Source: Dimorphilus gyrociliatus (lineage: Eukaryota > Animalia > Annelida). From it: DNA of 64,000 nt. The stretch spans positions 62,001 to 126,000 of the forward strand of contig CAJFCJ010000019.1 in assembly GCA_904063045.1 (NCBI GenBank). The letters are read 5' to 3'. Made by a program: the position numbers and the translations under genes. The notes under the pieces were generated by a model that searched no databases, had not been told where the DNA came from, and saw nothing but the letters and a program-made list of their open reading frames with translations. Below, one piece after another: positions 20,732 to 34,523 of this stretch (the stretch's first letter is position 1; each line of letters starts with the position of its first letter).

Positions 20732-23700
20732 ATGTCTCTTTCAAATTCAGACGTTGAAGATACAGAAACACATGGATTGAGCAGTAAGTGTTTTACATTA
20801 ACTTATTTTATCATCTTTTCGAAAAAATCGTCGACATAACCGTTGGATTCAGGCATAGACAGAGTAGTCCCGGTCGCACTCATCTTTGTCCTCTTTATAT
20901 ACTGAGGCGCATGGATATTTTCTGGTGCTATTTTATTTTTTTTTTTTTTTTGAGTTCGAAACAGAAAGTAGGAAGTATATAACTAATTATCACATTTGAT
21001 TAACTTCTTGTATTGGCCAACGGGTTTCTCCAAAGCTTTCGCTTTGACCTAAAAATTTAACAATAATCAGAATGCTATTAGAATTAACACTCGCTTTTCT
21101 TTAAACAGCTATTATCTTGCATCAACCTGCTGAAAATGTAGCGATTTTACCTGATAACTCAACAACGGATTCGAATTTGCAAAATAGTGGCATTGTAATA
21201 TTGCCGTTACCTGACGGATTGACTTCTGAGTCTGCCCAACTATGGTCCACCGAATCGCTATCTGAAAGTCCTATTCCCCAAAATTCTGTTATACCGCAAC
21301 AACTATATGAAAAAAATAACGTTTATTCATATAATAATAAATTATACGCCGTGATCGATGGCGAATTTCAACCGATTGAATTACAAAGCTCGGATATATG
21401 CAGTGCGCTTGATGAGAATGCCACTATAACAATTCAAAATATAGAAGATGATGAAACTTTGAAAAGAAAGCGACCGGAGGAGATAATAGAACCTCCTATT
21501 GGTAAAGGACCATACAAATGTTTAGTATGTGAGAAAATATTCGATAAATATCCACTTCTGATCCGCCACAAGAAAACTCATGCGAACGAGAAGCCTCATT
21601 GTTGCGATCACTGTAATGCATCATTTAATCATGAAGAGAATTTGAAAATTCATATGTCAATTCACACAAAAAGTGATAGACCAACATGTTCTCAGTGTGG
21701 GAAATCATTTAAGCGTCTAGCATCACTAAAGGCTCATATACACTATCACCTTCAAGATGAAACACTAATGTGCACTGAATGTGGGGATGAATTTAGCTCT
21801 TTATACAATCTAGATAAACACATGAATGAGCATACGCTAGTGCAAGTTCAACGTGAAAAAAGGACTTTAACTTGTAAATATCCCCAATGCAAAGAAACTT
21901 TCGACAGAGCATCAAGCTTACGTGAGCATCAGAAACAACATCAAATAATTACTGCCTCAATGGCAAGGAAACAAATTCATAAAAAGGTTATTGATAGAAC
22001 CCACTTTTCACATGCGTGTGTTCATTGCGAGAAAAGATTTCAGAAGCCTTCTCAACTGGAAAGACATACGAGAATTCATACAGGAGAAAGGCCTTACAAG
22101 TGTAAGATGTGCAGTAAGGCTTTTAATCAAAGTGGCGCTTTAAAATTACATATGCCAAAACATACTAAAGAAAGACCTCACAAGTGTGATTTATGTTTAA
22201 TGACCTTCAGTCAAAGAGGAAATTTACGTGCACATATAGCGCGATTACACTCCATTAATCCTGGTGAAGAAAATAAACGATTCAAATGCGACTATTGTCC
22301 GTGCATGTTTAGAAAATTGGGTTCTATGAATTCGCATGTAAGCAGATTTCATCCTAAAGCTGAAGCAGGACTAAATATCGAATCTTATAAATATCCTCCA
22401 ACATCAGAAGCTAATCCAAACGATTCAACAAGCCAAAATCTCGATGTACAAGGAAGTGATCCAGGAGGAGGTTCCGGGGATATTTTAAGTAGAGCCATGG
22501 AAAATAGCGGTGTTGAGGAAGAAAGAATTATGTCCCAGAATGTTCATGAGGAATTACCTGAATTAACAGACAGTGTATCTGGTGGAACACGGCAATATCA
22601 ATTGAAAATTTGCGTTCGATCTGGTGTAAAGTGGCATCAGTGTGACTACTGTTCAAAAGAATTTCGGAAGCCTTCCGACCTTATTCGACACATTAGGGTG
22701 CATACTCACGAAAGACCATATGCATGCAATCAGTGTAACAAGAGATTTGCTATCAAATCCACACTTACAAATCATAAAAAGACTCATTTGGGTATTAAAG
22801 AATATTCTTGTGCTGTTTGCTCAAAACACTTCGCATCGCTAGCTAGTCTAAAGGTTCATCAGAGGCTTCACACTGGATCTAAACCTTTTGTATGCACGCA
22901 ATGTGATAAAAGATTTCGTACAGCTGGCCATAAGAATGCTCATATCCAAACTCACTCGAGAAAAAATTCATCCTCAGCCGGAGTATTTCGAAGAAAAGTT
23001 AATGCTATTAGTGGCCAATCAAACAATTTTATTGAATCTCTGCCTGAAGTACAATTATCCCAACCGCTCAGAAAGTTACCAAATGGAACATTGTTAGAAC
23101 AAGCTCCAAGAAAAGCAAAATTCTTGGGAGATCAAATTGATCCTGATAGACCCCACAAATGTGACTATTGCTTGCGTGGATTTAAGAAGTCATCACATTT
23201 GAAGCAACATATTAGACGCCACACTGGGGAACGTCCATATAATTGCATTAAATGTCTTCGCAGTTTCTCCAGCGCTAGCGTATTAAAACAACACATCAGA
23301 ACACATACCGGTCAAAAATCTTATAAATGCGAAGATTGCGAAAGCAATTTTTCAACCAAAGGCTCTCTAATGAGACACAAGACGACTCATAGTGAAGAGA
23401 GGCCATACGTTTGTCCTTATTGTCATAAGGTTGGTTTAGGTTCAAAAAGTATTGAATTTACTTAAAAACTTATTTTTTATGTACATTTTTTTAGACTTTC
23501 AAAACAACGATGAATTGTAAGAAGCATATAAATACGCATAAGTACGAATTAAAGATGCAAGTTTTCGAAGACAATCGCGATTTAGGACTCATTGCCAACG
23601 ACCAGTCAAATGTTGCTGTTGAGCAGGACCCTTCCGGTTGTTTGCGAGAAACCACCACTGTTGTTTCAGAAGCAAGTAATCAAGTTTTTACTCAATCAGT

Positions 23701-25924
23701 ACAACCAAGTAATATTGTGCAAGAAGAGCAAACCCTACCTGAAGTAACGTTTCAAGAGCAAGTTAATACTGGTATCAATTACACAAGTAACGTTGAATTA
23801 AATTCGGATTTCGTTCCAACGAATGCCATCGCCGATTCCATTGATCCTCAACTATATGCATTAAATCAAATAGACACCAGTAATGCTTCTATTCTGACTC
23901 AAGTGCTGAATGCAGCTGGCGTGACTGGTGTTACTGGAGTAACCGTAGTTTCTGAAGACGAATCACATGCTGTTGGTACCGATTATACTATTGCTTCAGG
24001 TATTGAGACTCAACATGTGGAGAGTTTTGGACCATTGAAATATGTATTTTCTGATCCGAATCGTCTCTTTTTCAAATGTGCTCTCTGTTCAAAATTAGCG
24101 CCAGATCAATTAGAATACGACAGACATATGAGGGAAGCTCATCCTCAAACAGATCCGGCTACAGCACCGGCATTGATAGATACTCAATTGGAAAATGTAA
24201 TAGACTCAGTAAGAACTGTGTCAGCCGGAAGAGGCCGAAATAACACGCAAGTTATTAAATTAAGCGATGAACAGGCTGAAAAGCTTTCGAAAACAGAGCC
24301 TAATGAAAAAATGAGTTTATCTGAAAAGCTATTAATTGAAAGTGCCAGAGAACGATCCAGTTTAAGTTATGATCAACAAGTGAAATCTACCAGAATACTT
24401 GATATGATTGAAACAAATGTGACGGAAACTCCTACGATATCTTCCAATTCTTCTAGCCAAGGTGCTAGTATCAGCAATGGGGAAAGTGCTCCCTTGTCTC
24501 CCACAGCTACTGCATTGGTGCCAACTTCTCATCAAAGCTGTTCTAATACCGTTACATTGTCTGTTCAGGTGGAAAATTTAAATGAAGAGAAGCAAAGTAA
24601 ACAACGAAGAGCCGGAAAATCAACTGTCGGGCACAATAAATGCGAATTTTGTAATAAAGTATTTAAAAAGCCTTCAGATTTGGCTCGACATGTGCGTACT
24701 CATACTGGAGAGAAACCTTTTGCTTGCCCTACTTGCCATAGAACGTTTACAGTTAAATCAACTTTAGATACTCACTTAAAGATACATCAAGGGAAACAAA
24801 CAAAAGAATATTCTTGTCATATGTGCAACACTTCATTCGCAAGCAAAGGTTCGCTTAAAGTGCATATGCGTCTTCATACAGGAAGCCGACCGTTTAAATG
24901 TGCTCATTGTTCGCAAACCTTCAGAACATCAGGGCACAGAAAATCCCATCAACAGAATCATTTGAAGGGAGATTCTCCAACAAAATCAAGGAAACGAACG
25001 AATAGGGGTGGGTTAATCAGCGATTATGAACGTCGGGACAGAGCCGCAAAGCAATTACAAGACAGTAATCAGCAACCACATATATTTGACATGAACGATG
25101 GTCTTCGACCCAGCGGTGTAATTGCCTTGTTGGAATCTGAAAATGACCTTCCTAATAGTCAATTACAAATTAATCCCGCAGACTTCCAAATGCTTGTTGA
25201 GCATGCGGGTAATATGATGGATTTACCGGTAGATCCAAATTCCGATATGGCTGAGCAGGACTCATCACAGTGTGCTAGATCGCATCCTACATCTGTCGTA
25301 ATTGACACATCCGAAATAGAACGTTACGGAGTGTCAGTAACAGATATTCAACAAGATGGGACGGGACATCCAATATTTCTTTTTTCAGCAGTTGATAATC
25401 GATCTAAGGATGACGAAAATGCCGTAACGCCCATAGTTGTACAAACCGCACCTAGTATGAAAACTGAGAGAGCTCATAAATGTAAATTTTGTGGAAAAGC
25501 TTTTAAAAGAGCCTACCATTTATCAGAGCATCTGAGAGATGTTCACGGCGAAGGTGAACAAAAACCGAGACCGACTCCTCACAAATGCCAACATTGTACG
25601 AAATCATTTCAAAAACCTTCTCAACTGCAGCGTCATATTAGAATTCATACTGGTGAACGACCATTTCAGTGTGATTTGTGTGACAAAGCATTCAATCAGA
25701 AAAACGCTTTGAATATGCATCTAAAGAAACACTCAGGCGACAAGCAACATCATTGCCCTCATTGCAATCAGGGCTTCGTTCAGAAAGGAAATTTGAAAAC
25801 TCATATGAGGCGTGCTCACTCTCAAAAGGTGACTGACCAGAATTCACAACTGCCCTTTGATTCTCACTTGGGTCTCGAAGACGAACCCTTATCGGGTGAC
25901 GTACCGAAATTACTGTTTGACTGA
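20732..25924 (+). CDS. ZNF236: Multi-C2H2 zinc-finger protein, about 26 fingers, 3 coding exons
   Basis: Clusters [26 protein letters not shown] and [25 protein letters not shown] recur internally. The finger CPYCHK|[11 protein letters not shown] is split by an intron at about 23430-23495, matching recalled ZNF236 architecture. Confidence 0.82.
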
Positions 25925-25983
25925 TAATATCATGAAGATATATTTATCATTTATTTTATTGTGATCAAATGAAAAGACAAATA

Positions 25984-27096
25984 TTAATCTCTGAATTTCA
26001 AAGAATGATCTAAAGCTATTCGTGCTGCTATGGGACACTCGGGCCATCCTTTATCCTTCCACAATTCTTTGCAAACTTGAATCAACTTGTAAATGTGCTC
26101 ATCTAATTCTCGTGCTAACAATTCCTCTGTGATTTTCTTCCACCATTCGTCATTAACTTCATCTTTGACTTCATCAGTACTGTTTAACTTAGGTGATAGC
26201 TGTCCTACATAGGCACTTAATAATATAGCCATATAAACTGTAATTGTTCTTCTGGATAAATCACAATCTCCAAGAATCTTAACAATCTGTACAACAGACC
26301 ATCCTGAAGTTATACCATGAAGTAAGAAAAAATCATTCTTTCGTGCGGATTTTACATAAACAATAAGAGAAAGATGCAAAGCATAGTATGCTAAGTCCAA
26401 ACAAGTCTTTACGTCCTTAGGTACTTGAATACGGCCAACGAATTCCAAAACCTCTTCCGGATAGAACTTAAAAAGTGCAGCAATTCGTCTTTGAAGGTAG
26501 CTGTTAGCCATTTTCTGAATTGTCTCATCTTCAACTTTATTGAGCATTTTATCAGTTAATTTCTCAGTCATGTCGTTGACAACGATAAAAGGATTTTCTT
26601 TTCCCTGACCAAAAATAGCCGGATTTTTATTTAATTTCTCACAAGTTATAGGAATGTATGAATGATGAACATAAGCCAATCCATCTATTGCACTTGGATC
26701 ATGCTCCACCGATAAAGCATAACCCAAATGAATTAAACCATGAATCGCTGATCCAGCTGATCCGTCACATAATTGGGGCCATACTTTTTCAAGTACAGTT
26801 TTCATATCATTGTTACAATCGCGATAAACTCCTCTATAATATTCGACCAGCTTCGGATAAGAAATGCGCGCTCCTTTCAAATCTTCTATAGTAAGTTCTT
26901 CTTTCACCACTTCTGGATCACGAAGTTTATGAGTATAAAACTTGATAAATTCTTGAATTCTCTTTTCATCGGCTGCTAGCCTATACAGAGCTATAATACC
27001 ATGTATCATATGATTCGACAGAAATCCATCGTATTCAATATGATAATTTTTAGATGAATATTTGTCCAAAAGTTCGACTAGCCACGGTGTCGTCAT
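25984..27096 (-). CDS. Questin oxidase/DUF4243 (AflY/GedK-like) family protein, copy 1, intronless
   Basis: 370-aa ORF with LSNHMIHG, AIHGLIHLGYA, DFFLLHGITS and DEHIYKL motifs typical of this family. Confidence 0.8.
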   Translation of the reverse strand: MTTPWLVELLDKYSSKNYHIEYDGFLSNHMIHGIIALYRLAADEKRIQEFIKFYTHKLRDPEVVKEELTIEDLKGARISYPKLVEYYRGVYRDCNNDMKTVLEKVWPQLCDGSAGSAIHGLIHLGYALSVEHDPSAIDGLAYVHHSYIPITCEKLNKNPAIFGQGKENPFIVVNDMTEKLTDKMLNKVEDETIQKMANSYLQRRIAALFKFYPEEVLEFVGRIQVPKDVKTCLDLAYYALHLSLIVYVKSARKNDFFLLHGITSGWSVVQIVKILGDCDLSRRTITVYMAILLSAYVGQLSPKLNSTDEVKDEVNDEWWKKITEELLARELDEHIYKLIQVCKELWKDKGWPECPIAARIALDHSLKFRD

Positions 27097-27340
27097 AATG
27101 CAAAATGTTTGTATAAAGTTCTATATTGGAGCAAATTAGGTTGAGAAATAGAGCGAACGGTGAGTTTGTGATTTTTTTTAGGGAAACAATTAGAAATAAG
27201 GCTCACACTTCCCAAACGGAAAGTGATACCTATGAGAAAGCAACAACCAGTCTAGCGCTCATGGACATCACCGGTAGATGTCGTTAAGACTCATATTTTC
27301 AATTGGCTTTTAGCAACAAAATGAATAGTTTTTATTATTC

Positions 27341-27720
27341 ATGATCACTATAATGTCAGTAAATGTGATATTCTATCATGTTCTATTATTATTAAATGCA
27401 CATATATATTGTACATAAAAATGAAATTTTATTCATTGCAGTCGATGATAGAGAACATTACAGCAGAGTATAAATATATAGGTACAAAAGTATTACACAT
27501 GTAAGTAAGGCCTATGTAGAAAACACAGAGTATACTTAGCATCCTAAGGGGAAACAGTAATAGGTCAAATGTAGAATGTCAAGCGAAGAAAAAGACATAT
27601 TGAAAAATGTAATTTTAAAGTTATAAAACAAAGCAAGTGCAACGTTATGATATAGATGAAATCCAACCATTCGATTAGGAATGTGCCTTGAATATGGGCC
27701 TAAAAGTAGTACCCCAAGCG
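27341..27720 (+). pseudogene. Decayed partial copy of gephyrin exons 1-3
   Basis: 27559-27583 aataggtcaaatgtagaatgtcaag matches 29637-29661 at 24/25 nt. Degenerate exon 1 (catgatcactataatgtcagtaaat vs catggctgaaaccaatgtcattaaat) and exon 2 with its gtaagt donor are retained. Frameshifts and stops are present. Confidence 0.75.
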
Positions 27721-27884
27721 TCATCATTATCTCCATTCCCGTTAGAGCTATATTTAAAAAGGAAATTTAAATTCTCTTGAGACGCGCTGATTCAAAGAGT
27801 GACAGAAAGAAAGTTAGATATTATGATAAAAATAGATTATTTACTCAATTTAATACTATCAAATCAGAGATAAATTTTATTCTG

Positions 27885-28994
27885 CTAATCTTCGAATTTA
27901 AAAGAATGATCTAACGCAATTCTTGCAGCAGTGGGACACTCGGGCCATCCTCTATCCTTCCATAATTCTTTGCAAACTTGAGTCAACTTATAAACATGCT
28001 CATCTAATTCTCGTGCTAACAATTCCTCTGTGATTTTCTCCCACCATTCTTCGTTAACATCATCTTTAACTTCGTCAGTACTAGTTAACTTGGGTGATAG
28101 TTGTCCCACATAAACAGTTAGTAATGTAGCCATATAAGCTGTAATTGATCTTCTGGATAAATCACAATCTCCAAGAATCTTAACAACCTTTGTTAAAGCC
28201 CATCCTGAAGTTATACCATGAAGTAAGAAAAAATCATTCTTTCGTGCAGATTTTACATAAACAATAAGAGAAAGATGCAAAGCATAGTATGCTAAGTCCA
28301 AACAAGTCTTTATGTCCTTAGGTACTTGAATACGGCCAACGAATTCCAAAACCTCTTCCGGATAGAACGTATGAAGAATAGCAATTAGTCTTTGGAGGTT
28401 GTTGGGGAATTTCTGCATTAATTCGTCTTCAACTTTACTAAACATTTTATCAGTTAATTTCTCACCCATCTCTTGTGCAATACTAAGGGGATTCTCGTTC
28501 CCTTGGCCAAAGATAGCCGGATTTTTATTGAACCTGTCGCAAACTAACGGAATGTGCGAATGATGAGTATAAGCCAATCCATCTATTGCACTTGGATCGT
28601 GCTCCACCGATAAAGCATAACCCAAATGAATTAAACCATGAATTGCTGATCCACCTATTCCATCACATAATTGGGGCCATACTTTTTCAAGTACTGCTTT
28701 CATATCATTGTTACAATCGCGATAAACTCCTCTATAGTAGTTGACTACCTTCGGATAAGAAATGCGCGCTCCTTTCAAATCTTCTATGGTATATTCATCG
28801 TTTATCGCCTCAGGATCGCGGAGTTTATGAGTATAAAACTTGATAAATTCTTGAATTCTCTTTTCATCGGCTGCTAGTTTATACAGAGCTATAATACCAT
28901 GTATCATATGATTCGACAGAAATCCATTATATTCAATATGGTAATTTTTGGACGAGTATTTGTCCAAAAGTTCGACTAACCATTGTGCTGTCAT
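27885..28994 (-). CDS. Questin oxidase/DUF4243 family protein, copy 2, intronless
   Basis: 369-aa ORF, colinear tandem paralog of 25984-27096 with the same His motifs. Confidence 0.8.
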   Translation of the reverse strand: MTAQWLVELLDKYSSKNYHIEYNGFLSNHMIHGIIALYKLAADEKRIQEFIKFYTHKLRDPEAINDEYTIEDLKGARISYPKVVNYYRGVYRDCNNDMKAVLEKVWPQLCDGIGGSAIHGLIHLGYALSVEHDPSAIDGLAYTHHSHIPLVCDRFNKNPAIFGQGNENPLSIAQEMGEKLTDKMFSKVEDELMQKFPNNLQRLIAILHTFYPEEVLEFVGRIQVPKDIKTCLDLAYYALHLSLIVYVKSARKNDFFLLHGITSGWALTKVVKILGDCDLSRRSITAYMATLLTVYVGQLSPKLTSTDEVKDDVNEEWWEKITEELLARELDEHVYKLTQVCKELWKDRGWPECPTAARIALDHSFKFED

Positions 28995-29396: not shown

Positions 29397-31923
29397 ATGG
29401 CTGAAACCAATGTCATTAAATTTGGTGTTATTGCTGGTATAAATACAACTAAATACTTGTATATGCAACGTATTAAATATGAAATTTATACTAAACAGTT
29501 AGTGATAGAGGATATTCTGGAGAGCATACAGATAAGAGTGACATAATCTGTTCATTATTAACTGGTCAAAAGCTATTGTAAGTAAAAATCTCTTTAGGAA
29601 TCAGGCAGTAAGTTTCACATTATAGGGGAAAATTTTAATAGGTCAAATGTTGAATGTCAAGTTACGCGAAGAAATATTGTAAAAGACAACTTCGAAGATA
29701 TAAAACAAAACTTAATGCAGTGGTGTGATGAAGATGAAGTAAATATCTTGTTAACGGTTGGCGGTACGGGTTTTGCCGCAAGAGATGTGACGCCTGAAGT
29801 AAATTTTTCTTATTAAATATTTTCAATGATGGTTTAAACTAATACATTTAAAATTATTATCAAAAGGCAACTAAAGCTGTTATTGAAAAGGAAACTCCTG
29901 GTATTAGTTTGGCTCTTTTGAGTGAATCGCTTAAAATAACTTGTATGGCAATGCTATCAAGGCTTTGCTCTGGAATTAGAAAAAGAACTTTAATAATCAA
30001 TCTTCCTGGAAGCCTCAAAGGATCACAGGAGTGTTTGAAAATAGTTGCTCCGGTTTTAAAACACGCTGTTCAATTGCTAACGGATGATAAGATTGGTTCT
30101 GAAAAGATTCACAAAGATATGGGAAGTGACCAGCACCAACACCACCACCATCATCATCAAGAGCTCGAGACGCTCGTCTCAGCTGTTTGGCCTGATAACG
30201 TAGCTCTTAGGCCAAGGAAATCTCCCTACCCCATGATTAGTGTTGAGGAGGCTTTGTCAAAGGTTTTAGAACAAGTTGAGCTCTTACCTACTGAGACAGT
30301 CAATTATAAAAGTAGGCAAATAGATTTTTTCTGTTGTTTAAATGAGATAGCTAAGCGACTTTATACTTTCGAGTAGATGCGCTCCATAGAATCGTTGCAG
30401 AGGATGTTTTGGCCAAAGATGCTTTACCGCCTTATCCAGCCTCAATCAAGGACGGTTATGCGTGTATCTCTTCTGATGGTGCTGGCCATAGATTGGTTTT
30501 GGGAGATTCAACCGCTGGCTCTGCAGTTAGTTAAATATTAACAAAATGTTATCCTCCTAACTTAGATATTTTATTCTTTTGGAGTAGTCTGAGCACAAAG
30601 TTGTACCCGGTTATTGTGTTAGAATAAGCACTGGAGCTCAAATTCCTGTCGGCGCGGATTGCGTTATTGAAGTAGAGAGTACCAAACTCGTAAAAGATGC
30701 AAATGCTGGTAAAGAAGAGTTAGAGATTGAAATCTTGACACCTCCGAAACCAGGTCAAGATATAAGGCCCATAGGATTCGATATACCGAAAAACGAGATA
30801 ATTCTGAGAAAAGGCAATCACTTGGGTCCATCAGAACTTGGCCTCTTGGCTACTGTTGGAGTAACTGAGGTTTTTCCATATTTGTAACTTTTTTACAATT
30901 AATATATATATATACGCTGTATCTTCTTCTTTCTATTTCAAAGGTGCAATGCTTTAAGCAGCCTCGAATTGGCGTTATGTCTACAGGGAATGAGCTATTG
31001 GAACCTGAGGAGAGCTTAAAACCAGGCAAAATTCGTGATAGTAATAGAACAACTTTAAAAGCAGCTGTAATGAATGAGGGAATCCAGCCAGTATGTCTTG
31101 GAGTTGCCAAGGATACGTTAGTATAGGATGAGTTTTCAATTAAAAGGACAAACTTTATAATTAAAATCATATAGGGCTACAGATCTACTTAAGCAGCTGC
31201 ATCAAGCTTTTAAAACTGTAGACGTCGTTATAACGTCTGGAGGAATTTCTATGGGTGAAAAGGTTATTAATGAAAAAATATTGTTCCTTTAAACAAGTAA
31301 TAATCATCGACAGGATTTGTTAAAAGACGTTCTGAAAGCAGACTTTAACGCCATAATTCATTTTGCAAGAGTGTTTATGAAGCCAGGGTAATCTATTACG
31401 GAAATATTTAAATTATTAGTACACCGTATGCTCGACATATTGTAACTGTAGTTAATATTTTATTAAAGAAAGCCAACATGCTTTGCTACTTTGATGCATG
31501 AAGGGAAAAAGAAGTTAATTTTCTGTCTACCAGGAAATCCAGTATCGGCCATTGTCACCTTCAATCTGTATATCGTTCCTGCTCTTAAGAAAATGTCTAA
31601 TGATAATTCTTTTATGAGACCGGTGATTAAAGCGAGGGTAAAACAATATTTTATTTGATTATACTATAATAATTGGCGTATTATGTCTTTATTAGATTGC
31701 ATCCGATATTAAATTGGATCCGCGTCCAGAATATCATAGAGGTATCTTAAGTTGGACGAATGAAGATTTTCCATCGGTCGTAAGTACTGGAAATCAAATG
31801 AGCAGTAGACTTTTAAGTATGAAAAGCGCTAATTGCCTAATCAAATTACCTTCAAAGAGTGATGACATGAATATGATAAAAAGAGGAACTTTAGTTGACA
31901 CTATTATAATAAGTCGTGTTTAG
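29397..31923 (+). CDS. GPHN: Gephyrin / molybdenum cofactor insertase (G and E domains), about 11 exons
   Basis: G domain: [39 protein letters not shown] domain: [58 protein letters not shown]. Confidence 0.96.
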
Positions 31924-31967
31924 TAGAAAAAAGTACATTTGCTTACTTTTAAATTTTTACTTTGTTA

Positions 31968-32261
31968 TTAAAAATGTCGATACATAGGCCGGTTTCCGGA
32001 ATTCTTTGAGGGTGGGCGTAAGGGACTTGGTGGCCAAGACTTCTGAACTTTCTTTAGCCATTTTTCAATAGGGCACTGTGACTCTTCCAAGTACATAGGA
32101 TGAAGGCGTTTTAGATTTTCTTCAGTTAAAGGTAAAATATCATGTTGATGTCTTGATGTTGATTTTGAACGACTCTTTCTTTCTCTATATTCCCTCAATT
32201 GACATACACAATCGGTAATACATTTTCGATTTTTTGATGAGTATAAAAATTGTTCCGCCAT
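31968..32261 (-). CDS. Uncharacterised 97-aa single-exon protein
   Basis: The ORF fills the gap between gephyrin and the B56 promoter. The ATG is in strong context (aaaATGG, YY1-like AAAATGGCG). No homolog recognised. Confidence 0.55.
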   Translation of the reverse strand: MAEQFLYSSKNRKCITDCVCQLREYRERKSRSKSTSRHQHDILPLTEENLKRLHPMYLEESQCPIEKWLKKVQKSWPPSPLRPPSKNSGNRPMYRHF

Positions 32262-32722
32262 TTTTTTATAGTAAATATTAATTTTCGAACTTTTATTAGT
32301 TATTTGAATAAATTACAGTCAAATTTAGGCTAATTTAAAAGTTAAAAAATATGTTAGAACATCAGATGGCGTTAGAGTCCATAACACAGTCTCGGAAAAT
32401 CGCGATTTACCGCCATATTGTTCTGACGAGATTTCAATGAACAGTCATATTTCGCTGCTAAGATTATCGGATTTAGGTGTTTGATTGATTGATCGTGATC
32501 TTGGGAACAAGTTGTATAACGCCTGTCTTCATTAGGATAAGGGACAGTGCGTTCCGGATAGCGGCAATCGAATTCGAATGCCTATGTGATCAGTTGAAAG
32601 AGTCGGCCGATAATGGTGTTATTAGTTACTACGGACTATATATACAGAAACCTATTATCGAAAAGCAAGAAATTAAGGAGGGAGCGAATCTGAACTGAAG
32701 ATTTAAATTCTAATAAAACGAT

Positions 32723-34523
32723 ATGGCATCGAATAAAGAGAAAGGGGATCGCATAACCGATCCCTTCTTGAATAAAATATCCGTTAAAACAAGAAAACAG
32801 AAACGTAGTCAAGGATCGTCGCATTTCCGAAACAAAGGCCAAACGGAATTAACACCGTTGCCGATTTTGAAAGGTATAGTAATACATTTTTAATATCTAT
32901 TGATTTTATTATTTAAGATATGAATGAAGTTTGACGGTGGCGAATATCATTTTAACAAATCTTTTGAAACTCACCTATTCAAAACTTGGTGTAGTTAAGT
33001 AATTAAAAATGTTTTCATTCTTGGGCTACAGACGCTCCTGGGAATGAACAACAAGATTTATTCGTAAGGAAATTGCAACAGTGCTGTATCGTGTTCGACT
33101 TTATGGATACGGTGGCCGATCTGAAAAGTAAGGAAATAAAAAGGGCCGCACTAAATGAGATTGTCGAATACGTGACGGCAAACAGAGGTGTTCTTACTGA
33201 AACTGTTTGTCCGGAAATCGTGAAAATGATTTCGGCGAATATCTTGCGTACACTTCCGCCATCCGACAATCCCGACTTCGATCCGGAAGAGGACGATCCG
33301 GCACTAGAAGCATCTTGGCCTCATCTGCAGCTAGTCTACGAATTCTTTCTGCGTTTCCTCGAATCGCAGGACTTCCAAACGTCGTTTGTGAAGAAATACA
33401 TTGATCAGAAATTCGTTTTGCAGGTTCTAATACATTATGGCTTTTGTAACCATGACAACGTTCTATCATTCGTTTTTTTCAGCTTCTCGATTTATTCGAT
33501 AGTGAAGATCCAAGAGAGAGAGATTTCTTGAAAACTGTTCTTCATCGTATATATGGAAAGTTTCTAGGTCTTCGCGCATTTATACGCAAACAAATCAACC
33601 ACATTTTTCTCAGGTAATTCAATAAGCAAAGAAGATATGGTAAGTGAATTATTACACTATATAAAATGATACTTCTTTAATAGGTTTATTTATGAAACTG
33701 AAAAATTTAATGGCATTGGCGAATTGTTGGAAATTCTTGGTAGTATTATTAACGGTTTCGCATTGCCCTTGAAAGTGGAGCATAAGCAGTTTTTAATCAG
33801 AGTGCTCATTCCCTTGCATAAATCAAAGACGCTGAGTTTATATCATGCACAACTCGCCTATTGTGTCGTGCAGTTTCTTGAGAAGGACGCTACACTAACC
33901 GAACCCGTAGTAAAGGGCCTTTTAAAATATTGGCCCAAAACCTGCAGCACAAAAGAGGTGATGTTTTTGGGCGAAATCGAAGAAATACTCGACGTCATCG
34001 AACCTACTCAGTTTCAAAGGATCATGGAAATACTATTCAAGCAGATTGCTAAATGTGTAGCATCTCCTCATTTCCAGGTACTTAGCGTAAATTCGAATTT
34101 TTGCACTCACATCCGTTGATCAATTGTTTTGTCTTTGTAGGTAGCCGAACGCGCTTTATATTACTGGAATAATGACTACGTTATGGGTTTGATGGAAGAG
34201 AACATCAAGGTCATCATGCCAATTATGTTTCCTTCATTGTATCGTATTTCGAAAGAGCATTGGAATCAGACTATCGTAGCTCTTATTTATAGTGTTCTTA
34301 GGACGTTTATGGAAATGAATTCGACTCTCTTCGATGAACTTACCAATAATTATAAGGCAGAGAGGCAAAAGTAGTATAATTAATGTTATGGCCCTCTAAT
34401 CTATTAGCATTCTTGTACCATTTCAGAGAAAGAAAGAAGGAAAAGGAGAGAGAAGAGATGTGGAAAAAATTAGAAAAACTTAAGCTGCAGCACCAAACTC
34501 AGACGAATAAGAAGAAACAATGA
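32723..34523 (+). CDS. PPP2R5: PP2A regulatory subunit B' (B56), alpha/epsilon/widerborst-like
   Basis: N-terminal [16 protein letters not shown], then [17 protein letters not shown]-like [42 protein letters not shown], and [16 protein letters not shown]. Confidence 0.96.

Follow-up and report, generated by a model that had tools for sequence, protein, structure and literature searches.

Characterized fungal and bacterial members of the Questin_oxidase (DUF4243) family cleave aromatic rings and act on hydroquinone substrates, and to our knowledge the family has been characterized in fungi and bacteria only. Its 4-His-1-Lys iron-enzyme chemistry was reportedly recognized only in 2022, and is said to have been studied solely in fungal and bacterial natural-product pathways. 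Among the fungal members, AflY/HypA and GedK/MdpL belong to the aflatoxin, geodin and xanthone pathways. PaD from Aspergillus westerdijkiae (PDB 8Z4Q), a hydroquinone dioxygenase of penicillic-acid biosynthesis, binds its metal through H63, H166, H317, H394 and K397, and carries three lid motifs (K56-F60, K246-A258 and T444-D448) (PMC11371914). BTG13 from Cercospora (PDB 7Y3W), of the same family, is a dioxygenase cleaving the ring of chrysophanol hydroquinone (an anthraquinone substrate). Its second-shell residues H58 and T299 tune the carboxylation of the lysine, and His53 is critical in substrate binding and proton-coupled electron transfer (PMC12173810).

Two genes of this family were found side by side in the annelid Dimorphilus gyrociliatus, within a 64,000-nucleotide stretch of contig CAJFCJ010000019.1 (hereafter the window; Table 1). 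They are probably two functional paralogs of an animal gene passed down vertically, which encodes a DUF4243/BTG13-related non-heme iron dioxygenase of a distinct eukaryotic subfamily. A literature search found no paper on the DUF4243/Questin_oxidase family in animals, and a search by locus tag found no paper mentioning the animal orthologs.

Table 1. Features of the gene pair and its surroundings (positions in the window)
Feature	Positions	Strand	Basis
Two adjoining single-ORF C2H2 zinc-finger genes, 782 and 804 aa	21117..25924	+	ORFs, Pfam zf-C2H2
Copy A, intronless DUF4243/Questin_oxidase gene, 370 aa	25984..27096	-	ORF and PF14027
Upstream segment of copy A (putative promoter), co-duplicated	27512..27632	-	Direct-repeat families D3, D4
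Copy B, intronless paralog of copy A, 369 aa	27885..28994	-	ORF and PF14027
Matching upstream segment of copy B	29590..29709	-	Direct-repeat families D3, D4
Multi-exon gephyrin-like gene, then PP2A B56 exons	29909..34119	+	Exon-by-exon Pfam matches

Gene pair and family membership

The tandem pair of full-length, intronless genes described in an earlier note on this DNA was recovered as two complete open reading frames, exactly at the positions of Table 1. The two proteins were 83% identical with a single one-residue gap, and copies A and B were the only ones returned when the 77.9 Mb assembly was searched throughout in six frames. A polyadenylation signal (ATTAAA/AATAAA) was located 23 nt past the stop codon of copy A, and an AATAAA immediately past that of copy B.

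The assignment to Questin_oxidase/DUF4243, also made in that note, was borne out by Pfam. Profile PF14027 matched copy A with 111.5 bits (E 8e-32) and copy B with 109.7 bits (E 3e-31), about 110 bits against a gathering cut-off of 27 bits; a search of NCBIfam returned no match. In both copies, PF14027 matched as a single unbroken stretch, nearly end to end (profile positions 2 to 339 of 340), and both were therefore considered full length and intronless.

The AF2 model of copy A (pLDDT 95.4, pTM 0.94) comprised 18 helices and displayed the all-alpha fold of the solved DUF4243 members. Its only significant PDB matches were 8YXS, 8Z4Q, 8Z4R, 7Y3W, 7Y3X and 7Y3Y (TM 0.65 to 0.73). Searched against PDB sequences, the profile of the clade likewise matched PaD (E 3e-22), AflY and BTG13. 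The solved fungal enzymes exceeded the worm proteins in length by 70 to 100 residues.

Genomic neighborhood

The pair lies in a contig of 3.79 Mb, with animal genes on both sides. The second zinc-finger gene converges with copy A, the two stop codons being 59 bp apart. On the other side, the gephyrin-like gene (MoeA_N, MoCF_biosynth and MoeA_C pieces) and the B56 exons were recognized by a Pfam search of each exon separately, with no joined spliced model. The neighbors had been described as intron-rich, which holds for the gephyrin-like/PP2A-B56 side with its short exons but not for the zinc-finger side, where the genes are single long ORFs; the pair is therefore no intronless island amid intron-rich genes. 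No biosynthetic gene cluster (PKS, reductase and the like) was present around copies A and B, whose neighbors were the C2H2 zinc-finger, gephyrin-like and PP2A-B56 genes.

In the sister species (L001), a single-copy ortholog, 71% identical, occupied the same zinc-finger/gephyrin/B56 locus. There, the zinc-finger pair stood beside the ortholog, and a 141-aa ORF followed by B56 stood on the other side. The same arrangement was found in four independent read sets of a related species. GC content was flat over the whole region, and the GC3 of the copies (0.283 and 0.305) was close to that of the adjacent zinc-finger gene (0.299). That the genes are contaminating or mis-assembled microbial DNA is scarcely credible: nothing but the microbial reputation of the family speaks for it, and it is opposed by the flanking animal genes on a long contig, by the arrangement repeated among independent read sets and by the uniform base composition.

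Metal site and substrate-contact residues

The histidine motifs pointed out in the earlier note (N28-H29, H119-G-L-I-H123, L-L-H260 and D332-E333-H334) were all found. By alignment to PaD and BTG13, the predicted metal ligands of both copies are H29, H119, H260, H334 and K337. In the alignment of 52 sequences of the clade, H119, H260, H334 and K337 were invariant and N28/H29 were present in 51. The second-shell residues H58 and T299 of BTG13 aligned with worm H32 and T263, which were conserved in 42 and 50 of the 52 sequences, respectively.

The position of BTG13 His53, a histidine in PaD, AflY and BTG13 alike, was occupied by Ser27 in copies A and B. Animal-type rows displayed Ser or Thr there in 21 of 26 cases (the remaining five having Ala or Phe), as did almost every choanoflagellate, foraminiferan-type and amoebozoan-type row, while His was found in four of the five deep or fungal rows. 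The motif of the eukaryotic subfamily is [FY]L[ST]NH, against HNH in the fungal enzymes. Because Ser/Thr stands where the fungal enzymes have their substrate-activating His, the chemistry of the subfamily is regarded as uncharacterized, and its substrate or mechanism may differ from those of the characterized enzymes.

It is thus conceivable, if somewhat unlikely, that the fold and metal site were kept for another activity, either an oxygenation or rearrangement of another type (as has been suggested for the bacterial relative OzmD) or a non-catalytic binding of metal or ligand. Such an activity would be in keeping with the Ser/Thr of most subfamily rows, with the shorter chain, with residues 151 to 210, a variable region in the clade alignment, and with the divergent reactions known within the family (PMC12173810). 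However, the near-strict conservation of the ligands over 52 divergent sequences, together with that of T263 and H32, argues for a working metal center, and Ser or Thr could still hydrogen-bond a substrate hydroxyl. A dioxygenase is accordingly the reading preferred here.

Taxonomic distribution and phylogeny

Taxonomic spread was read from the named minority of the 150 closest representatives. Animal relatives, at 30 to 37% identity, came from Capitella (two genes), Owenia, the nemertean Lineus, the bivalve Argopecten and the copepod Tigriopus; the annelid relatives represented three deep branches, and the animals together outranked every named non-animal match. The next named relatives were from a choanoflagellate, a foraminiferan, amoebozoans and a diplonemid, all of them eukaryotes, and fungal HypA/AflY proteins were 19 to 25% identical to the worm protein. 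The genes of Lineus, Argopecten and Tigriopus were found on chromosome-scale scaffolds (15.7 to 44 Mb), those of Capitella on a 537 kb scaffold and that of Owenia on a 25 kb record. None of the contigs had the look of human DNA. The gene was an uninterrupted single ORF in Dimorphilus, its L001 relative, Owenia, Lineus, Tigriopus and a 788 kb eukaryotic contig; the Argopecten gene contained one or more introns.

Two peptide-pattern scans of 185,579 GTDB species, the pattern being taken from the animal-type profile in one case and from the deep clade in the other, retrieved no bacterial relative; the scans worked by pattern matching, and no match was confirmed by tblastn. A bacterial identity of the deep clade P0177 (on a gene-dense contig) was considered and set aside, since all the names drawn in by a broad profile were fungal, yeasts and a chytrid among them; a compact fungus is more likely.

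Neighbors of the relatives in other animals included a homeobox gene, GPCR genes and ZNFX1. A 7tm_1 GPCR gene lay about 2 kb downstream in both Lineus and Tigriopus, but a tblastn of the Lineus GPCR at the Tigriopus locus gave no match, so that this adjacency was judged coincidental rather than conserved microsynteny.

Trees were computed with FastTree on 140 rows, with a quick C20 run on 63 rows and with a careful run on 16 named rows, bacterial members being absent from all. In the 63-row tree, the named animals all grouped in a single clade (SH-aLRT 90), the outgroups being eukaryotic. The place next to animals was taken not by the choanoflagellate clade but by foraminiferan-type and unlabelled clades, and the branching order of these outer clades was weakly supported. 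The fungal HypA-like tier was a far outgroup in both the 140-row and 63-row trees. Within the animal clade resolution was poor: in the 16-row tree, foraminiferan, diplonemid and gregarine-transcriptome sequences were intermixed with animals, and annelid monophyly was not recovered in the free tree. AU tests rejected neither annelid monophyly (p 0.108) nor animal monophyly (p 0.097). The diplonemid gene was nested beside that of Lineus, and the subfamily can therefore move between eukaryotes.

Origin of the animal genes

The earlier note had left the choice between horizontal acquisition and a patchily retained ancient gene. The second option is sustained by the shared synteny, the host-like GC3 and the animal relatives, while recent transfer is not supported; an old gene that marine invertebrates and protists have retained here and there is the favored explanation. 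Broad orthologs with a species-tree-like phylogeny had been named as what would speak against transfer, and for a recent event this is largely what was found, in the animal relatives and in AU tests that spare annelid and animal monophyly. The gene goes back at least to the ancestor of annelids, and probably to that of protostomes or beyond.

Recent transfer from a microbe into the worm lineage, followed by duplication, is very improbable. The absence of introns and the characterization of the family in fungi and bacteria only could suggest it, but the sister species holds a syntenic ortholog at saturated dS, the GC3 is the same as in a host gene, and the best matches outside the genus were annelids and other invertebrates, well above fungi in identity, with no bacterial match found.

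Transfer at a very early date, at the protostome base or before it, can still be entertained since the trees took in no bacterial sequence. In such a scenario, a protist or bacterial gene would have entered an early animal (e.g., on the protostome or spiralian stem) and been inherited vertically thereafter, keeping its intronless state. We regard this as unlikely. The patchy distribution among animals, the uninterrupted ORF shared by distant holders of the gene, the position of foraminiferan-type and unlabelled clades nearer to animals than choanoflagellates, and the movement between eukaryotes suggested by the diplonemid gene are compatible with it. On the other side, the GTDB pattern scans retrieved no bacterial relative, the named non-animal relatives were all eukaryotes and included a choanoflagellate, the order of the outer clades was weakly supported, the Argopecten gene is interrupted, and the same evidence equally fits ancient presence followed by many losses. 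With retention of an old gene favored, there is one candidate fewer for recent microbe-to-animal transfer, and the microbial look of the family reflects where its members were studied.

Duplication and selection

Copies A and B were sisters in the tree (support 97/95). Their dS was 0.30, while dS to the L001 ortholog was at least 1.6 and saturated. The duplication is thus lineage-specific and followed the split from the nearest sampled relative; the worm pair is independent in origin of the pairs in Capitella, in Argopecten and on contig L010. The upstream segments of the two copies were 72 to 78% identical, and the matching segment ahead of copy B indicates that the duplicated unit (about 1.9 to 2.1 kb) took in about 600 to 700 bp of 5' flank.

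Purifying selection acts on both copies, with dN/dS of 0.30 between them and of 0.09 to 0.14 to the L001 ortholog, so that the duplication with maintenance of both copies proposed in the earlier note could be upheld. Unique substitutions were more numerous in copy B (28) than in copy A (14; Tajima relative-rate p 0.03). Gene conversion between the copies was considered and rejected: synonymous differences were spread without a clear tract, and the blocks of high identity corresponded to conserved protein regions. The pair amounts to a young tandem duplication of an ordinary kind, in which both copies are constrained. In the proposed course of events, the gene and about 0.7 kb of upstream DNA would have been duplicated in tandem in the worm lineage, both copies then evolving under purifying selection and copy B about twice as fast.

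Proposed function and comparison with known enzymes

By homology to the solved enzymes, the worm proteins would be soluble, all-alpha enzymes, with iron held by H29, H119, H260, H334 and K337, the counterpart of the lysine carboxylated in the solved fungal enzymes. They would employ O2 to break a C-C bond in an aromatic substrate of the hydroquinone type; iron binding, lysine carboxylation, dioxygenase activity and hydroquinone substrates are all predicted on this footing. As no biosynthetic cluster surrounds the genes, they likely serve to break down or detoxify aromatic compounds from the diet or the environment. The part in quinone detoxification put forward in the earlier note is an inference: the characterized members act on hydroquinones, and the subfamily departs from them at a residue in contact with the substrate. 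The [FY]L[ST]NH proteins would form a distinct subfamily, patchily distributed in marine invertebrates and heterotrophic protists.

Genes of this separate, conserved subfamily are carried by choanoflagellates and other protists and, as part of their chromosomes, by annelids, a nemertean, a bivalve and a copepod. The known range of the family is thereby extended to animals, with compact, intron-free genes that can easily be expressed for testing. More tentatively, animals and many heterotrophic protists may possess an ancient [FY]L[ST]NH subfamily of 4-His-1-carboxylysine dioxygenases whose chemistry is unlike that of the fungal cleavers. If so, it would provide the first enzyme of this metal-center class described in Metazoa, kept by marine invertebrates to degrade dietary or environmental aromatics or to process quinone pigments of their own, and the standard model animals would have lost it.

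Among known systems, AflY/HypA and GedK/MdpL have PF14027 in common with the worm proteins. An AflY homolog (8YXS) gave the best Foldseek E-value for the worm model (5.9e-9, TM 0.69), whereas the HypA-like fungal tier as a whole differs by its HNH motif and its low identity.

PaD was the best PDB match of the clade profile, which aligned over PaD residues 32 to 408; the all-alpha fold is shared (TM 0.65) and the five ligands align. Identity is nevertheless only about 16% in the structural alignment, PaD is longer (473 aa against 370 in the worm), and it has His61 ahead of the N-H ligand motif where the worm has Ser27. The PaD gene belongs to a fungal polyketide cluster, while the worm genes have no such cluster. 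Of the PaD lid motifs, only K56 was an insertion relative to the clade in the profile alignment, and the region of motif 2 aligned with unrelated sequence. The alignment ended at PaD 408 (profile position 364 of 390) with no equivalent of motif 3 seen, and the tail that holds this motif is probably absent in the clade.

BTG13 resembles the worm proteins in fold (TM 0.73), in the 4-His-1-Lys site, in the second-shell pair and in a substrate contact (F292, aligned with worm F256). It differs by an identity of about 13%, by His53 in place of Ser27, and by its partner reductase and biosynthetic cluster.

The animal orthologs, none with a described function, include ELT92798.1 and ELT92782.1 of Capitella teleta, the gene of Owenia fusiformis, XP_064623862.1 of Lineus longissimus, TCAL_14951 of Tigriopus californicus and XP_069132384.1 of Argopecten irradians. 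Besides their 30 to 37% identity, they share with the worm pair the [FY]L[ST]NH motif and a similar length (370 to 431 aa), and they are mostly intronless and often arranged in tandem pairs.

Tandem duplication of an intronless PF14027 gene

The tandem pair of full-length, intronless genes at 25984-28994 observed in the earlier note is confirmed. Both copies are complete ORFs (see table) matching PF14027 (Questin_oxidase, formerly DUF4243) at 111.5 bits (copy A) and 109.7 bits (copy B), against a curated cut-off of 27 bits. Each covers profile positions 2-339 of 340 in a single stretch and is therefore full length and uninterrupted; the end-to-end match also bears out the proposed family assignment. 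Neither copy matched the bacterial and archaeal family models of NCBIfam. The D. gyrociliatus genome was published at 73.8 Mb, with short exons and introns (PMC7854359); a six-frame search of the whole assembly (77.9 Mb, 349 contigs) recovered copies A and B only.

Features of the DUF4243 gene pair and its zinc-finger flank
Feature	Position	Strand	Description
Two C2H2 zinc-finger genes	21117-25924		single ORFs, 782 and 804 aa; one flank
Copy A	25984-27096	minus	complete ORF, 370 aa
Upstream segment, copy A	27512-27632		72-78% match to 29590-29709
Copy B	27885-28994	minus	complete ORF, 369 aa
Upstream segment, copy B	29590-29709		72-78% match to 27512-27632

The two proteins share 83% identity, with one gap of 1 residue. 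The duplicated unit spans about 1.9-2.1 kb, including about 600-700 bp of upstream flank, as displayed by the match between the two upstream segments. An AATAAA or ATTAAA signal lies at most 30 nt past the stop in both copies. Between copies, dS was 0.30 and dN/dS 0.30, while dS to the sister-species ortholog was saturated (1.6-2.3; dN/dS 0.09-0.14), and the copies were sisters in all trees (support 97/95 in a 16-sequence tree). The duplication is therefore later than the split from the sampled relative, and both copies are still constrained, in line with the earlier reading of a duplication with both copies maintained. Unique amino-acid changes numbered 28 in copy B vs 14 in copy A (Tajima relative-rate test, p 0.03), and 24 of the 62 differences between copies fell within residues 151-210, a stretch variable clade-wide.

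Tandem pairs recurred independently on a 788 kb eukaryotic contig (L010:10001-13346), in a scallop (L013:1-7859) and in a deep-branching compact genome (L014:4973-7885), and the near-identical Capitella copies (P0015 and P0161) share one scaffold. This family apparently tends to duplicate locally.

Genomic neighbourhood and recent transfer

Copies A and B lie inside a 3.79 Mb contig. The zinc-finger genes are arranged head to tail with 44 bp between them, and the sister species has kept this pair. Copy A and the second zinc-finger gene converge, their stop codons being 59 bp apart (25925-25983), and the corresponding gap in the sister species is 57 bp. No AATAAA or ATTAAA occurs in the 200 nt past the second zinc-finger stop, so that the 3' UTR of this gene must overlap copy A in antisense. 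The other flank holds a gephyrin-like gene in short exons (MoeA_N, MoCF_biosynth, MoeA_C) followed by PP2A-B56 exons, all searched exon by exon. The description of the pair as intronless among intron-rich neighbours thus holds for the gephyrin/B56 side, but not for the single-ORF zinc-finger side. One gephyrin-like exon (29909-30376) encodes a run of seven histidines, placed in the linker that joins the MogA-like part to the MoeA-like part.

The earlier note had left two origins standing, horizontal acquisition or a patchily retained ancient gene. A recent transfer into the worm lineage is refuted by a syntenic ortholog, host-like GC3 and the saturated dS to that ortholog. Four read sets obtained independently from a related species yielded contigs encoding the ortholog (P0003, 71% identical to copy A); in the longest contig (L001, 17.6 kb) it is single-copy and flanked by the same zinc-finger pair and by the gephyrin-like exon and B56. 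The zinc-finger gene next to the pair has a GC3 of 0.299, which the two copies match (0.283 and 0.305). The ancient, patchily retained gene is the better of the two origins.

Distribution and phylogeny of the subfamily

Searched exhaustively with phmmer, 1.84 billion representatives gave 762 matches at E <= 1e-3, of which 66 reached E <= 1e-30. Below the sister-species ortholog came a dense tier at 30-37% identity, whose named members were Capitella teleta (both copies on a 537 kb scaffold), a tandem pair with intron(s) in the scallop Argopecten irradians, and single uninterrupted ORFs in Owenia fusiformis (L005), the nemertean Lineus longissimus (L011, 29 Mb chromosome) and the copepod Tigriopus californicus (L012, 15.7 Mb chromosome). 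The pair on L010 is also uninterrupted and lies beside a ZNFX1-like gene. Capitella is a sedentarian, and Owenia branches below Dinophiliformia, Errantia and Sedentaria. Errantia and Sedentaria together form the sister group of Dinophiliformia (PMC7854359). Given this position of Owenia, with those of Dimorphilus and Capitella, the gene is shared across the deepest divergences within Annelida.

Among matches carrying names, the more distant relatives were all eukaryotic: the choanoflagellate Choanoeca perplexa, the foraminiferan Bolivina argentea, the amoebozoans Balamuthia and Filamoeba, and the transcriptome of the diplonemid Rhynchopus humris. A near-identical genomic copy of the latter (at least 90% identity; L015:8001-9248, 3.3 Mb contig) sits among same-strand, intron-free, tightly packed genes, an array typical of euglenozoans, and the diplonemid copy is therefore a real protist gene. 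A sequence from the transcriptome of the gregarine Selenidium pygospionis (P0065, EukProt) also sits within the animal clade, at the end of a long branch. The gregarine parasitises a polychaete, so this sequence may be RNA carried over from the annelid host and not a gene of the parasite.

Widening the profile added a further tier outward, made up entirely of fungal HypA/AflY-like proteins (19-25% identity). Bacterial names were absent from the named matches of every search, tblastn confirmed no relative among the pattern matches from two peptide scans of 185,579 GTDB species, and the family was not found in 14 control genomes; these negatives are weak, since bacterial PF14027 members exist (atlas clusters) but lay outside the comparison set.

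All named animals fell in one large, poorly resolved clade in a FastTree phylogeny of 140 rows. A quick site-heterogeneous IQ-TREE of 63 rows recovered an animal clade of 38 rows (SH-aLRT 90), followed outward by foraminiferan-type and unlabelled clades, a choanoflagellate clade, amoebozoan-type sequences and a fungal/deep group. These two trees cover the fungal and metazoan parts of the phylogeny proposed earlier, and place the animals in one clade with the fungi outside. The backbone of the animal-type group lacked resolution in the careful 16-sequence tree of named taxa. AU tests did not reject monophyly of annelids (delta lnL 3.4, p 0.108), of the nine named animal sequences (delta lnL 10.9, p 0.097) or of animals plus two doubtful protist rows (p 0.276), and the trees did not show the strong incongruence expected from repeated transfers. 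Vertical descent agrees with these data but is not proved by them, as their power is low; a very old horizontal transfer is a possible but less likely origin. The pairing of the diplonemid sequence with Lineus (support 93/92) is a hint of a single transfer between eukaryotes, either animal-to-diplonemid or the reverse.

Predicted active site and comparison with fungal enzymes

A clade profile identified PaD (E 3e-22), BTG13 and a homolog of AflY as the three relatives with solved structures; these DUF4243 structures were also the only significant PDB matches (TM 0.65-0.73) of the AlphaFold2 model of copy A (pLDDT 95.4, pTM 0.94, 18 helices). PaD binds iron through H63, H166, H317, H394, a carboxylated K397 and one water (PMC11371914), a 4-His-1-carboxylysine centre that is shared by BTG13 (PMC12173810). 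Counting along profile alignments, the corresponding predicted ligands are H29, H119, H260, H334 and K337. The last four are invariant in the clade alignment, and N28 and H29 occur in 51 of 52 members. The BTG13 residues that form hydrogen bonds to the carboxylysine, H58 and T299 (PMC12173810), align with H32 and T263, and the BTG13 substrate contact F292 aligns with F256. Copies A and B would probably be working iron dioxygenases cleaving some hydroquinone-like aromatic compound, with carboxylation of the lysine, binding of iron and catalytic activity all inferred by homology.

A departure at a position important to the mechanism concerns BTG13 His53, which holds the hydroxyl group of the substrate and has a supporting part in proton-coupled electron transfer (PMC12173810). 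This residue is also His in PaD, AflY and 4 of 5 rows of the fungal/deep group, but Ser27 in both worm copies. Of the 26 animal-type rows, 21 carry Ser/Thr at this position and the remaining five Ala or Phe; almost every choanoflagellate, foraminiferan-type and amoebozoan-type row has Ser/Thr as well. In the open-access literature searched, work on DUF4243 or questin oxidase dealt with fungi or bacteria only, a BTG13 review named fungi and plants as hosts (PMC12173810), and the Capitella, Tigriopus and Lineus locus tags had no mention. The family itself is known; its animal and protist branch, marked by the Ser/Thr substitution, appears to lack a published description.

On the gene-dense 10 kb contig of the deep-branching compact genome (L014:1-10130), two DUF4243 genes lie between short-chain dehydrogenases, a context resembling the clustered setting of the fungal enzymes and contrasting with the animal loci. 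The solved enzymes are 70-100 residues longer than the worm proteins, and their substrate range and mechanistic details cannot be read across to the worm. The worm genes lie outside any biosynthetic cluster, and a role in catabolism or detoxification is more likely than one in biosynthesis. The pair thus belongs to a known enzyme family as a variant of modest interest, and is no instance of microbe-to-animal transfer.
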